A stretch of DNA of 64,000 nt from Dimorphilus gyrociliatus. Its lineage: Eukaryota; Animalia; Annelida. The position numbers were made by a program, and so were the translations under genes. The notes below the pieces were generated by a model. That model was not told the origin of the DNA. It was given only the letters and a program-made list of their open reading frames with translations, and did not search any database. Shown piece after piece: positions 23,974 through 32,140 of this stretch. Within the stretch, counting starts at the first letter, position 1. Every line of letters begins with the position of its first letter. The DNA lies in contig CAJFCJ010000013.1 in NCBI GenBank assembly GCA_904063045.1, positions 62,001 through 126,000 on the forward strand, in the 5' to 3' direction.

Positions 23974-24298
23974 ATGAGGAGCGGTTGCTTCTATTGCGTT
24001 AAATATTCGCTATTCGTCTGCAATTTCCTATTCTGGGTAAGTTGCAAATACTTTACAAGTGAATGGAACGTTGGGTAGTCTATTCCCTATTACTTTGCGG
24101 ATCTTAGAAAAGTAAGACATAGACTAGAATGTGGCCAAGTTAAATTAGAATAAAAGAAGAATAAGAACACAAAGTAACATAGAAGAAAGAGAGATAGACA
24201 GGGAGAGAGAGGGAAAGAGAAAGAGAGAGAGAGAGAAGAGGGGGAAATAAGTAAGTAAGTAAGTAAGTGAGTGAGTGACTGAGTGAGTGAGCGAGTAA

Positions 24299-24347
<49 letters not shown>

Positions 24348-26129
24348 GTTATAAGAGGTAGGTAGATGGCTAGGTAGACAGAGTTAAAGAGGGAAAATCT
24401 ATATTCGCCTACCTGCATAATGAATAATATAAATTTTCGACTTGGACGCAAGGTAATGGAAGAAAAATTACAATGATAATAGAGTAAAAGAGGAAGACGA
24501 AAGCACCTGTTTAGCCTGTAACGCATCAATCGCAACCGACAAGCGAGTACTAGTTTGTTTACGAACGTCTCGGCGTAATTAGGTAGAGTAGTTTCAGGAA
24601 TTGAAAACATCGAACCTAGCAAAAATATTTTTTTTGGATAGAATTCTTATAAGATGTATAGGATTATACTATATAATGTATATTTATAATGTAATATATA
24701 GACATATAATATAAACCTAAAAAGCAATAAGACGTATAAAAAAAGATAGCTTTCATTAGAAGTTCTGTATTATTTTTTTGTCAGGTAGTTTTTGCAGTAG
24801 ATTGACGTCAGTCAAACGAACCAGTCTAGCCATCAGTTGACAATATATATATATATATATATATTAATATTAATAAAGAATGATAATTTGATAGGAGAGA
24901 AAAAAGGCAAAAGTTCTATTTTTATGCATAGGATACACATACAGTATTACTTTGTAACAGTTTGTTAAATTCAAAAGGAATACGGGTTTGATAGTTGTTA
25001 TCTTCTTGTTTTCTTTTTATATATTTTTTACAGATTCTTGGTTGTACACTAGTTGGAATTGGTATATGGATAAGAGTTGAAAAGAATTTTAGTACTTATT
25101 CTCAACATACAGACGGTTTTGATTATCTGTATACAAGTGCCTATCTTTTCGTAATTATCGGTTGTTTAGTTACGATTTTAGCCTTTCTTGGTTGTTGCGG
25201 AGCATTAAGGAAGAGCTCGTGTATGTTGTGCGCAGTATGTTACTATTCTTTCTCATTTGAAATTTATCTCATTACCGGAGATACTCGGTTATCTTCTTAT
25301 TTTCTTCCTCTTTATTTTTCTCTTATAAAGAATGTAATCAAAAGTCGGCCTTCGGTCTAGATTCTCTCACGTGACGAAAAAAAAATAGAACCAAAACAAA
25401 TACATATAGAATAGTGCTATTGAACCACGGAAATTACAATTTCTTTCATTTCTTTCTTTAGTTCTTCTTTTGCCTGTGCGTCGTCTTTGCTACTCTGGTT
25501 GGTTTGGCTATTTTAGGTATAGTTTTTAAGCACAGCATTAAAACGTCCTTGCACGAAACGCTGAAAACCGCCATTAAGGATTACTCCAATCCCCGTGAAA
25601 GAGAATCGAAGGAATTGATAGACGTCATTCAGGAGACGGTTCGTTTTCTTAGACAACATCAAATATAATTTGAGAAGTTTATTAATTATTTATAAGTTCG
25701 TTTCACCTTTTCTCTCTTTTTCTTTACTTTTCTTTTTAATGTTCATATAGATGAAGTGTTGCGGAGCGTCGGGACCGGCTGATTACGAAGAACAAACGGC
25801 TCCTTGCGCCGTCGAATACCTTCAAGAAGTAATTTTATTATTTGTATATTCCTATCAAGTGGTATAGTTTTCCCAACCAAATCTTTATTATTCTTTTATT
25901 AGGGGTGCACTGACAAGCTTATAGCATTCTTAAATCAACCGCAAATTATATCCTTGATCCTGGCAACATGTAGCTCCGTTGCAACCCTTATGGTAAAAAT
26001 TTAAATAAGCTTCTAAGTGAAACGTAATAAAATTTAAAAACGGATTTACTTTTAATTCTCTTTCAGATAATCGGAATGGTTTTTTCCGCTTGGTTATGCT
26101 GCTCTATTCGACGTTCTTCTCGAGCCTAA
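23974..26129 (+). CDS. Tetraspanin (~223 aa); exons 23974-24036, 25034-25234, 25462-25638, 25751-25828, 25903-25992, 26067-26129
   Basis: MRSGCFYCVKYSLFVCNFLFW|ILGCTLVGIGIW; FLGCCGA between TM2 and TM3; EC2 with CCG motif; four TM segments. All introns are GT-AG, phase 0. Confidence 0.92.
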
Positions 26130-26687
26130 GTAAATTTTTATTGCTCGAAAGGAAGAATTCCAATGGAGGATATTACGAAAAGAAGCTTTTTTTGAGCAGG
26201 ATTTACTTTAATTTTCAGGTCATTTATATTTCATTCAATGACATTTTTGTGTGAAAAAAAATAGTCCCTTTTGAAATGAGGACAAAAAGTTGTATTTTAT
26301 AAAGATTTTTTCATAAATATATCTATTTTTACAAAATAAGAAACAAACTTATTATTAATCTTTAACACATAATCTTATTTTACACCTTTAAAGGAAAAAC
26401 GTGTCTTTCTTTTACATTTCCAAATCACGTGTTTTCAGTTAAAAGTACTCAGTGGGTAAAAAATATATAAGCACACGCGCTAATTTCGCACTTTCTTACG
26501 CCGAAGAACACTGTCAGACAAAGCGTATGTAAACCACGTGTTTTAATTATTTTAATACAAATATATCCCTCTAAATTATTATTTTTCTATTCTAAATAGT
26601 TCTAATATCGTTCTTTGCAACTACCTTTTGAAATCTCTACCGTGACAGCTAATTTTGGAAAGTTTGTTATAGCTTTATTTCAACAAC

Positions 26688-29600
26688 ATGGGCGACCAAG
26701 TGATAAGCTATGCCAATGGACAATTTTATGGTGAGTAAAATATAGTAAAAGCGTAGGTTGTAAGGTTGTAGTTTAAAAGATGAAAAAAAAAGATTACCAG
26801 ACTGAGTGTAATTACCTTAATGGTCAGACATTTTTTTTAAAGGAAATAAAAAGATTTCCAGAAAAAAGTAACCTAGTGAACAATTTTCCAATGTATAAGA
26901 CCTGAAAGAACGTTTTACGTAATATACAGTCGGAAAATATATCTAGTTACTTAAAACCTGCCTCCACATACTTCTTATCTGAGCTAAAGTTAATTATATC
27001 GCCACGTGTTAGATTAAAGGGAAACTATCTTGTGTCAACGAATTATAGAGAACACGTATACGCTTTGAAAAAGTTTTCCAACTCTGTGAGATATTTAAAA
27101 ATGAAGTCTCGTGTCTCTTTTTTCTCAGTTTTCTATTGCTATTATGTGGGGAGTAAAAAATATTGGTAAGAAGAGTGCTGTACATATATGAGACTACCCG
27201 GGTTTGCGTATAAACTACCGTGTGACAGTTAATATCACAAACTGCTGGAGGGCAGGCAGCTTCTTCGTACTATTACACGTTAATGGGTGGCTAGTTGTCT
27301 TTTTCAGGCGTGATAAACCGCAAGGGGAAAAAATCATCAGCCTAACATATAACGATAAACGCTAATGGATCTTCGTGGCCTATTAAGCCACTTTCACTCT
27401 AATTTCCAATAATATTTTTTCTATACTATTGTAAAATAGTAGTTTATAGGCTTTACCTTTTCTTCTCCAGAAGAATAAATTGAATTGATTATAATTTGTT
27501 AGCTACGAATTAAAACGTAAGTTTATAATTGTGTCAATTAGTTATTTATTCATTTTTAACTAAATTGTTTAATATAAGGAATACCAATGATGAAATATTT
27601 ATAAAGACTAATAATAACATACCATACAGTGAAAAACAAGCAAAAAAAGGAAAAGCAATAAAGGAAAAGTTAAAATTCTTTGCATATATGGATTTACATT
27701 TTACATGTAGCTTAAGCATGCTCTTACATTTTTATTTTTGGTATCATCTTTAGAATTATACTGAAATAATTGCTAGAATTCTAAGAAAACCGAAATAATA
27801 ACGAAAAAGCCTTAAGAGACTTTGTTTGACTTTGTAAATAAAAAAAGATTAGGAGTAGAGGGATTGAGTGAGGAGAATAAAAAACAACAAAAATAAAAAC
27901 ATCCTTTCATACTAATTGAAGTATACCTATAATGCATACAGTAACAGTCCAAATATAAACTTTGTTCGATACGCATATATTAATGAATGTGAAAAATATA
28001 AGTTACTTTTAGGATATAATTATAAACATTCGCGTAATTATGTATAGATATGCTAAACAATTATTCTAATATACTCTATTTTTAGTATATTTATTTCTAG
28101 AGTGATAGAATTTTTGATTGTAATTGCGTGATCAGATAATTATCGCTTAATTTTCATTCTTTCTTTCATTTTAACACCTAAAATTATTTCAGAGGTAAGG
28201 AAATTAAAAACAAAAAATTCTTTAGATTTATTATAGCGTATATGTAATATAACATGGAATAGGCAATGTGGAATAAAAATAAATACGAGAAATATTAGAT
28301 GTGTAAGCAATTACGTAAGTGCGTAAAAGTCGAACATAATTTTAATGCAAAAGTTAGCATAAGAAACAGATATGATAAAACTGACGTTTTTCCCTTTCTT
28401 GATGTTGTTGTTAGAGAGATGTTATGATACAGTTTGTAACGTAAACAAAGTGTGAGTTATCGCTATCATTGTTTACCTTTCTTTACCTCATTACATATTT
28501 TTGTTCGGAAGGAAATTCCTTCATTGATAAGAATTTTTCTCGTATTTCAGATAATAACTACTGTGACGGTAATTGGCCGTATAATCCACATACTGCTCCA
28601 CCACCAACGGATTCGGTACTTTACTGGATGAGCCCTCCACCGCCTGTGCCACCTCAACATTTCAACACGGCTTTAAATTACCATCATAGTCCATTGAATA
28701 CCAATGTGTATAATTTTGCCGATAGGCCCTGCCATTCTCCATTGCCTATGATGGCTCCTGTCATGCCGCCCGCAACTTTTACTTCAGCAACACAAGACAG
28801 CCAAATCGACATGTTCGAGAGGGCGATGGATCTTAAGTGTCTGCGCGAGAAGAATATAAAGTATAAATTTTCTTTGAATCTTGTCAATAAAAAAAAAACT
28901 AGTTGGTCACTCTCGTTACAATTAGATTGGTGGATGAAAATCAGCTACCACCCTCCGTTCTGAGCCTTGAGCGCCTTACTGCACTAGGGGGAGGACAACA
29001 AAATGCTTACGAAAAAGACCAGGGATTAGGGGGAAAAAACTGGACTCCTCCACACTCTACAAACAACGCTTCGCCTCAATATCATCGTAGCAGAGCTAAT
29101 AAATGGAATCAAACCAAAGCCCGTACACCAAAAAAGAGCAGTTTAACACCTGCTAGAAAGACTGAAGCTGTTAATACGCTAGGGCAACCTAACCATAAAG
29201 CTTACTCCTCGAAAATTAATCCACAGGAGCTCGAACAACCAGAGAGGCAGATGTTTCACATGTTACCTACATTGACTTATGGTAAGGTTACTCTTGTCAG
29301 TTTATATAAACCTCTTATATCCAAAGCCGATAGATAGCGCTCTGAATGATAAATATATGAAATGTAATTAAAAATTAATATTTTTTCTAAGAAAATCAAC
29401 TTCCACAAGTAACTAAGGATGGCAAATTGGAATTTAAAAATAATACGAGCTTACCACGCTTACCTCCTCCAGAGTCTTTTGAAAAGGTAACATTTATTAA
29501 ATATATCCATATTTATAGACAATATATTTAAATTTTTATTATTATTCCATATGTAAATCTCATCAGCTTATAAAGTCGAAGAGGAGGAGAAAAAAGGGAT

Positions 29601-32140
29601 CGAAAAAGTCTGGTGTATTTAATTGCGGATTTTGTCGCAAGAACAACATAAACAACCCTAGCTTCCAAACGCATCCTTTAAAAGATGAAGAATTCCGCGT
29701 TCTTTGCCCTATGCTGAGAGCCTATATTTGTCCTATATGCTTAGCGAGAGGAGATAATGCACATACATTAAAGTACTGTCCGTATGCTGTCAAGCCATGG
29801 TTTATAATGAAAATTACTTTGTCTCATTGGTCTTCGCTACCTCTTTCTGTACAAATTCGCCTTACGAAATTGGCTAATGAAACGGGAATAAAATCAATTG
29901 AACCAATTTATCCAAATACCAAATTAGACTATTTGTCTCGATCTCGATTACATATGAATATGACTGTTTCCAATGCAGTAACTCTTCTTCGTAAAGGATA
30001 CTTTCATTTTTATCCCGTACCTCAACGAAAACAACCAACGGAAAATCTAGCCCCGAGACATCCGGAAAATTCGTACAATGAAACATATGGGAATATGAAT
30101 TTCGACGTGAGCCCTAACTCAAATGAAAATTCCACAATAAATCCAACTTTACTATCCCGTGTTAATGGTAATAACGTACAAAGCAATGGAATGACAATGC
30201 ATTTAAATACGAATTTAAATAATCAAGGGCAGTTCCTTCCACCAATAGCCACTGGTGTAAATATGAATAATCAAGGGCAGTTCCTTCCACCAATAGCCAC
30301 AGATATAAATATGAATAATCAAGTGCAATTCCTTCCACCAGTAACTACAGATATAAATATGAATAATCAAGGACAAACTCTCCCACCACTAACTATGGAT
30401 ATAAATATGAATAATCAAGGGCAATCTCTTCCACCACCAGCTATGGATATTAACATGAATAATCAAGGACAGTATCTTCCGCCATTACCCACGGAAATGA
30501 ATATGAATTCGAACATAAACATGAATATGCATTCAAACCTGATTCCAAATCTCCATATGAATATGAATCCTGCCACGAATCCAAATATTCCTATAAATAT
30601 AAATCCTGATACCAGACCAATTTTCCACATGGACATGAACAATTCAACGAATGTAAATAATCTTGCCTATCAAAATCCAACTCAATCTTACACACCACCG
30701 TCAAATATGACTCAAACAACCCAGTTTCCACAGAATCCTCTTGTACTTACTCAAGGTTACAAGTTTACGAGAGAGAAGATTCTGGAGACAACTGCTGCCA
30801 TTGGGTCGGCTATTTTCCCTCCAATTATCAACAATACTGGATACGGGTATCAAACTGTCCCGGAGCCTGTTACGTATCAAGAAAATCACAGAAATTTTGC
30901 TCAATCAGAAGCTATTAATCATATGCCCGTTAAAAGTTATAAACACGTAGACGGATCGCACAAATATAATTATAATAAGAAACACGATGTGACTTTGACG
31001 AATAAACCTCGTAAAGAAATTACAAAATTCAAATCAATACCCAGTCATTTTAATACCAATTCAGTAAAAGGACATAAATTTCATACCAGCACTACTACAA
31101 TTCAAACCAAGCCAGAAAAATTGGAAAAACCCATAGAAAAATTAGATACTGTTTCTGATATAAATGGCAAGAAGACTAGTGAGAGAAATGACAAAATTAA
31201 GGCAGTCACATCAAAGGGGTTTTCGAAAACCACCAATACAAATAAGATAATCCCAAAAAGTAATTCAAAATCTTTACATAGAGAATATCGTTGTGTACAA
31301 ATTACGAGAGGTGGGCCTAGTAAGAAAACTAAATTTAAGCATTCCACTAATCCGGAGGTCACAAAGGAGAAAGATGAATTAGGCGAGTTAACAGCAGAAA
31401 GCAGTGAAGCTGATTTAAAGAATACTCCAGTTTACAAGTCAACGTCCAGTACTGTTAGTAAGATAAATACAAAACGTGAGGATGAGAAGAAATCACGAGA
31501 TTATAATACAAACGTTGATAAGACTAAAAATCAGCAAAGCGAAGCAAAACCTAGAGTTCCAACCTATTCAGAAATAATAACGAGAAATACCAATAATAAA
31601 TCAAACTGTTTAAAAAACACCAAACTTCCGGATGCAACAAAATCGCAATCTTTCCAAAACTCCAAAATTTCAAAAAATGAAAAAATAGAAAATTCCGGTA
31701 AATTGAAATCTGAGAGAGATACAGTTCGATCAAATGCTGTATCTAATAAACCGACAGAGGACTCAAAGTTGGAGATAGCACAAAGCGAAGCACCCAAGCC
31801 AAAAATCCCAACATATTCTGACATAATTATGCGAAATAATCCAATGAATAAAAATAATACAACTGTCGAAGGTGTTAAAAAGCCGATTGTTAATAGTCAG
31901 AAAAAGTTGGAAGACAAGACAATAAATCCAGCGCGGGAGGGAACCAATAATCCGAAAGAACGTTTAAATGACTCAAAAAAAACCTGTCAGGTTAGACCAA
32001 TAGGATTAAAAACTTATACCAATCCAAATAGAAACAGGAGTTTACGAAATGAGAGGAGTGTAAATGACAATCAACGGACCGATGGACACCTAAAGAAAAA
32101 TGGAAGGAAAAATCATATCAGGTATTCGGAAAGATGTTAA
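26688..32140 (+). CDS. nanos: Nanos-type CCHC zinc-finger protein, ~1125 aa; exons 26688-26730, 28551-28860, 28926-29281, 29392-29486, 29567-32140
   Basis: 29624-29779 encodes CGFC-x12-H-x10-C-x7-CPIC-x7-H-x4-C, the exact Nanos spacing, with LRAYICP and AHTLKYCP motifs. Exon phases are consistent (1,2,1,0) and total 3378 nt. Confidence 0.85.
30212..30499 (+). repeat. Coding tandem repeat, 6 x 48 nt (16 aa: N[ML]NNQGQxLPPxxxD[IV])
   Basis: aataatcaag recurs at 48-nt spacing (30218, 30266, ...); six in-frame units are visible in the 809-aa ORF. Confidence 0.95.

Follow-up and report, generated by a model that had tools for sequence, protein, structure and literature searches.

Among animal regulators of the germline and of stem cells, Nanos proteins belong to the most conserved, and in their canonical architecture the zinc finger lies near the C-terminus and is followed by a short unstructured tail. 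A 64-kb stretch of the genome of the annelid Dimorphilus gyrociliatus (G000:C13:62001-126000, hereafter the window) contains a Nanos gene, DgyrCDS9254, that departs from this plan, since the finger is followed in the same exon and the same frame by 786 open codons, from 29780 to the stop codon at 32138-32140. This raises the question of what these codons encode and whether they belong to the Nanos protein at all. The answer that we prefer, with a probability of roughly 0.6, is that the gene is a real, translated and derived Nanos paralogue, whose product consists of the finger, a directly adjoining five-helix domain of ~71 aa and a disordered tail of ~714 residues encoded in the same exon.

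The Nanos finger and the gene model

The finger was recognized by the Pfam zf-nanos profile (PF05741) at 68.1 bits against a cut-off of 27 (E 7.5e-19, profile positions 1-53 of 54), and it reached 73.5 bits when the D. gyrociliatus genome was scanned with the zf-nanos profile. As read from the translation of 29624-29782, its spacing is canonical (C-x2-C-x12-H-x10-C and C-x2-C-x7-H-x4-C), and the codon of the last finger Cys ends at 29779. Among solved chains, phmmer aligned the finger with Drosophila Nanos (5kl1_B, E 5.2e-17) and zebrafish Nanos (3alr_A, E 4.8e-12). The top four Foldseek matches were likewise Nanos chains, including 5kl8_B, 5kl1_B and 3alr, with weak E-values (0.01-0.1) because the finger part of the AlphaFold2 (AF2) model had a predicted local distance difference test score (pLDDT) of ~60. 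The ratio of nonsynonymous to synonymous divergence (dN/dS) of the finger between the window gene and its counterpart in a related species was 0.13, with dS saturated. By every criterion of the finger, DgyrCDS9254 belongs to the Nanos family.

DgyrCDS9254 (P0001, 1085 aa) is a deposited D. gyrociliatus protein without a name, which includes the whole C-terminal extension. In a word-index protein search it matched our exon translation at 100% identity and 100% coverage, and when mapped back to the window it gave four coding exons with GT-AG borders (Table 1); the last of these begins at 29567, the very position from which the first-pass annotation starts. The frame that holds the finger and everything behind it (29519-32137, 873 codons) is the longest open frame of the window. 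A first-pass annotation, made from the DNA letters, had predicted a CCHC-CCHC Nanos finger ending at 29779 and the 786 open codons behind it, both of which were borne out by the profile search and the open frame. It had also assembled a protein of ~1125 aa with the finger at aa 288-339; the great length holds, whereas the deposited model has about 40 fewer residues at the N-terminus, so that the finger occupies aa 248-300. A literature search found no paper on D. gyrociliatus nanos genes or on DgyrCDS9254.

The domain behind the finger and the loci that carry it

The first-pass annotation had described the whole ~786-aa extension as being of low complexity. Its length was correct and the description fits the last ~714 aa, but the first ~71 aa are conserved, hydrophobic and predicted to be folded. 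The evidence for this domain comes from other Nanos-like loci of the same genome and from orthologues in a related species. Scanning the genome with the zf-nanos profile revealed four loci, and at least four or five Nanos-like loci are present in all. Besides the window copy, the domain follows the finger at L001 (on C10), L004 (on C19) and L017 (on C235), and a profile of the domain searched against the same genome scored 133-136 bits at three loci and 44-48 bits at two more. This profile added L017 and L018 (on C22) to the loci known from the zf-nanos scan. In alignment A1, the domain of the window copy and those of L001 and L004 (for L004, the last exon only) aligned without gaps at 36-37% identity with 16 invariant positions. 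Alignments A1 and A3 taken together were nearly gapless; the sequences were 32-43% identical to the window copy, and 14 columns were invariant, of which the core reads T-x2-H-W-x-S-L-P ... E-P.

Sequences of the related species (P0002, P0003 and contigs L005-L012) were obtained from Logan runs SRR23372216/228/229/231 and SRR31984834. The genomic contigs are syntenic with D. gyrociliatus, and dS between the two species is saturated (about 1.7-2.1). P0002 is the orthologue of L001, having the same TatD-DNase neighbour and 124/146 identical residues, and its domain is 32% identical to that of the window copy. The contigs of P0003 are colinear with the window (blastn blocks from 25016 to 29862, 67-84% identity), which makes P0003 the orthologue of the window gene by position. 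The two proteins share 51% identity over finger and domain, whereas an upstream neighbour gene (25016-26128) is 82-84% identical at the DNA level to the related species' contig, indicating that the window paralogue evolves fast. The domain has a dN/dS of 0.30 between the two species despite the saturated dS, which shows that it is under purifying selection. In addition, a block of 200 nt (28279-28479) that precedes the annotated start codon is 76% identical to the related species; it may be a 5' untranslated region, part of a promoter or an upstream exon that the annotation lacks.

A splice at GTATGC (29782), right behind the finger, had been named in the first-pass annotation as an event that would detach the extension. 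This site was rejected, because the 71 codons that follow it are conserved as protein in the paralogues and the orthologue and are under purifying selection (dN/dS ~0.3).

The domain appears to be confined to this lineage. When its profile was searched with HMMER against 1.84 billion representative proteins, only P0001, P0002 (149 aa) and P0003 (189 aa) were retrieved, and there was no match in Pfam, none in the ESM Atlas and, by profile search, none among the sequences of the PDB. In an AF2 model of finger plus domain, based on a five-sequence alignment, pLDDT ranged from 77 to 92 across the domain, and a model of the domain alone had a mean pLDDT of 80 and five helices. For the predicted fold, Foldseek against the PDB matched the finger and nothing for the domain, and in a wide VIA-align comparison with 48,161 chains the highest Z was 4.1 (HdeA), which is well within noise. 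For these reasons it is regarded here as a helical domain restricted to this lineage, whose predicted fold has no known match, with the reservation that the alignment is shallow and the helical fold small. As far as these searches reach, neither the domain nor the small paralogue family carrying it has been described before, and the combination of a Nanos finger with the directly adjoining domain would define a lineage-restricted, dinophilid subfamily, as delimited in this analysis.

The members of this putative subfamily are otherwise short. L001 and L004 have ~76 residues behind the finger and then a stop; they lack the tail, and neighbouring genes abut both. L004 (L004:1176-1630, minus strand) is a minimal two-exon gene of ~135 aa, which opens with the finger, is interrupted by a phase-0 intron in its second CCHC motif and closes behind the domain; since its product was absent among the matches of the representative-protein search, it may be unannotated. 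At L017 (L017:1400-1743) both CCHC motifs are shortened to a knuckle-like spacing ahead of the domain, and a strong GTAAGT donor lies just upstream of the stop. L018 (on C22) is nearly identical to L017 with homopolymer frameshifts, and is thus either a haplotig or a pseudogene. The remaining locus, L002 (on C20, minus strand, L002:1396-2265), is a canonical-looking nanos whose finger scores 81 bits with the zf-nanos profile; like the window copy it has the zf-nanos finger, but this is followed by a short Ala/Gln-rich tail of ~35 residues and not by the domain. Because this more canonical, short-tailed copy exists, the window gene is regarded as a derived paralogue and not as 'the' Nanos of the genome. 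Hence the earlier assignment to Nanos stands with respect to family membership, but not if it is taken to mean the sole or canonical copy.

The C-terminal tail

The tail proper (29996-32137, ~714 aa) is made up of a linker, a block of tandem repeats, further stretches of biased composition and a long basic region that is predicted to be disordered (Table 1), in agreement with the first-pass description of an Asn/Gln/Met/Pro block followed by a Lys/Ser/Thr/Asn-rich disordered region. Its DNA has 42% A, an AT skew of 0.28 and 35% GC. The repeats lie within an Asn/Pro/Gln/Met-rich block and were detected at 30218-30508 by Tandem Repeats Finder (TRF) with a period of 48, 6.1 copies and 83% matches. 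The basic region contains 16% Lys, 11% Thr, 11% Asn and 10% Ser. The Asn/Gln block is only moderately prion-like in its composition, for Asn plus Gln reaches a maximum of 35% per 60 aa with 14% Pro in the same block, and the remaining tail is highly charged.

The 704 codons that follow the conserved domain are free of stops in the finger frame, whereas each of the five other frames has 32-70 stops, and the chance of such a stop-free run was estimated from the local base composition as ~4e-23. Most of the divergence between the repeat units falls on synonymous sites (mean dN 0.15, mean dS 0.97, ratio 0.15, from five in-register small units forming 10 non-independent pairs). The same tendency was observed in a short motif present in three copies, in which the two strong copies, the second and the third, differ in their 10 core codons by four synonymous and two conservative changes. 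Judging from the sequence, the stop-free frame and the mostly synonymous differences between repeat units and between motif copies indicate that the tail is translated and selected.

Searches for relatives of the tail by protein word index returned only DgyrCDS9254 itself, and the search of its own genome only the window locus; the ESM Atlas gave no usable match. A search with the junction piece found nothing, and since it missed the paralogues too, its sensitivity is limited here. Nor was any published description of the architecture found. C-terminal low-complexity extensions of variable length are known in the Nanos family (PMC4003280), so the tail can be seen as the extreme of a known family property.

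Table 1. Features of the window Nanos gene (window positions; motif and repeat consensus in single-letter code)
Feature	Position	Strand	Basis
Coding exon 1, Pro-rich N-terminal region, ATG at 28628	28628..28860	+	Exact P0001 mapping; GT donor 28861 set by eye
Coding exon 2, ending in the short motif QMFHMLPTLTY	28926..29281	+	P0001 mapping
Candidate short motif QMFHMLPTLTY, end of exon 2	29248-29280	+	Conserved in related-species orthologue
Coding exon 3	29392..29486	+	P0001 mapping
Coding exon 4 including stop codon: basic stretch, finger, post-finger domain and entire tail in a single open frame	29567..32140	+	P0001 mapping, open reading frame
Nanos CCHC-CCHC zinc finger	29624..29782	+	Pfam PF05741, phmmer, Foldseek
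Predicted helical domain, ~71 aa, directly behind finger	29783..29995	+	Paralogue/orthologue alignments, AF2, dN/dS
Asn/Pro/Thr/Ser-rich linker, 74 codons	29996..30217	+	Composition
Block of six 16-aa tandem repeats (48 nt each), consensus ~NMNNQGQFLPPIATDI	30218..30517	+	TRF
Met/Asn/Pro-rich stretch, then Gln/Pro/Thr/Tyr-rich stretch	30518..30982	+	Composition
Short tail motif QSEA-x(3-4)-P-x-x-Y-x-x-[IV], first copy, degenerate	30905..30949	+	Sequence
Basic Lys/Thr/Asn/Ser-rich region, predicted disordered, 385 aa, net charge +38	30983..32137	+	Composition
Short tail motif, second copy, core PTYSEII	31538..31576	+	Sequence
Short tail motif, third copy, core PTYSDII	31784..31825	+	Sequence

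Possible function, alternative readings and meaning

To our knowledge, the functional parts of Nanos proteins outside the finger are short linear elements, namely the NOT1-interacting motif (NIM) and, in flies, the Pumilio-binding helix. When 24000-29700 and the paralogue loci were scanned in six frames for the NIM pattern (~F-x-x-W-x-D-Y-L-x-L), no match within a gene was obtained, and no NIM-like pattern was found within 1.5 kb upstream of L002. The first-pass annotation had also recognized no NIM in the window gene; this is expected, as all annelid Nanos proteins were reported to be without one (Bhandari et al. 2014, PMC4003280), and it distinguishes the window protein from vertebrate NANOS1-3, which carry the motif. 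The only N-terminal part found to be conserved between the two species is the short motif at the end of exon 2, which aligns with QMLHMLKTLT of the orthologue with 11/17 identities (pattern QM[FL]HML.TLT) and is not present in the other paralogues; it is a candidate linear motif.

Drosophila melanogaster Nanos (5KL1/5KL8 chain B) resembles the window protein in having the same CCHC-CCHC finger and a functional element directly behind it. In the fly protein, the segment I376-E385 directly after the finger forms a Pumilio-clamping helix on which repression depends (PMC4995099), and phmmer aligned KPWFIM, the first post-finger residues of the window protein, with Drosophila KPIITM, which contains I376 and M378, both of which contact Pumilio (PMC4995099). 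Beyond these first ~6 residues, the PDB profile search detected no similarity between the domain and Drosophila Nanos. The post-finger region of the fly protein comprises 28 residues and ends the protein, whereas that of the window protein comprises the 71-residue domain and ~714 further residues. In vertebrate Nanos proteins the C-terminal extension has tens of residues without a folded domain (42 residues in human NOS1; PMC4995099), compared with ~786 in the window protein. The short sisters L001, L004 and P0002 share the finger and the domain with the window copy and lack its tail.

In the reading that we prefer, the frame of the window copy, and possibly also that of the related species' orthologue, would run on past the point at which the sister copies stop. 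The finger would bind mRNA like those of other Nanos proteins, and the domain would most likely dock a partner protein, because it stands in the place of the C-terminal helix by which Drosophila Nanos contacts Pumilio. Since annelid Nanos proteins are without a NIM and none was found in the paralogues, effector or assembly contacts may reasonably be sought elsewhere. The tail might supply such functions by way of the short motifs that it repeats, a basic region that could bind RNA without specificity, and low-complexity sequence that could make multivalent contacts; the candidate elements are the three tail motifs, the basic region, the repeat block and the N-terminal motif.

Several points weigh against this reading. 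The continuity of the mRNA across exon 4 is judged from the gene model in the database and from the open frame, the AF2 models of the domain were built on 5 sequences only, the likeness to the Pumilio-binding segment of Drosophila spans about 4-6 residues, and the functions suggested for domain and tail are pure inference. Moreover, the frame of the related species' orthologue stops 43 codons past the domain and is followed by a spacer of ~200 nt, AT-rich and filled with stops. After the spacer, a stop-free Val/Pro/Asn/Gln-rich open reading frame (ORF) of at least 140 codons appears in the same frame, which contains tandem units of ~10 residues (PGVNQVPAMS-like) and inside which all four contigs break off. 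From its position downstream of the orthologue's domain, it follows that a low-complexity, repeat-bearing coding stretch lies at the same place in both species. An alignment of the window tail with this ORF was tried and rejected, as it scored below the mean of shuffled sequences (z = -0.56), so that the likeness is one of composition only. As many as 27 frame-preserving GT-AG pairs could join the orthologue's domain to the ORF, none of which is compelling.

These observations bear directly on the possibility that the mature mRNA terminates or undergoes splicing a short way behind the domain, in which case the ~700-codon tail would be a separate coding unit, an alternative isoform or internally initiated, and the 1085-aa fusion an annotation read-through. 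L001 and L004 indeed stop 5-6 codons past the last conserved Arg of the domain, near the start of the window linker; a potential donor, GTAAAG, is found at about 29990 in the window and another, GTAAGG, at the end of the orthologue's domain, where the stop and the stop-rich spacer precede the low-complexity ORF. However, there is no stop between domain and tail in the window, where the 74-codon linker would be stop-free by chance with a probability of ~0.5%, the tail is in the frame of the finger in both species, and the deposited gene model joins the two. On balance we consider such a short mRNA improbable. That the tail is a functionless by-product, in which a lost stop led translation into A-rich sequence and expanded repeats that are tolerated and unselected, seems to us very unlikely: although the tail is A-rich, has no relatives in our searches, cannot be aligned with its counterpart region in the related species and is dispensed with by the short paralogues, a stop-free run of its length at this GC content would need either ongoing selection or a very recent origin. 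The low ratio of nonsynonymous to synonymous divergence among the repeat units, the three retained motif copies, whose differences are mostly synonymous, and the open low-complexity frame retained at the same place in the related species also speak against it.

In many animals the germ plasm is a site of Nanos action, and the first-pass annotation had suggested that the tail is a scaffold of germ granules (condensates) which has been joined to an RNA-binding repressor. The Asn/Gln-rich repeated block, the long basic disordered region and the multivalent repeated motifs would suit such a role; on the other hand, the Asn plus Gln maximum is modest and accompanied by Pro, and the more canonical L002 could carry the germline role, so this proposal may be held as possible though doubtful. 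A more far-reaching version, which we think rather unlikely, would be that the domain is a new fold of dinophilid annelids that makes Nanos an adaptor family with a new partner, the Pumilio interface being replaced or modified, and that in the window copy it is fused to a selected, multivalent disordered region of ~700 residues that nucleates or joins RNA granules, thereby providing its own scaffold instead of CCR4-NOT recruited through a NIM.

The genome of D. gyrociliatus is compact and known for gene loss. In this compact genome Nanos has expanded to four or five loci, and a predicted folded domain without detectable relatives has been added behind the finger. Being specific to one lineage, the finding carries moderate weight at present. 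If our preferred reading is true, the window gene provides a natural example in which a repressor and a low-complexity region have been fused. Should the domain be a module for partner binding, it would illustrate how effector contacts can be acquired by Nanos proteins without a NIM, as in annelids, insects and flatworms.

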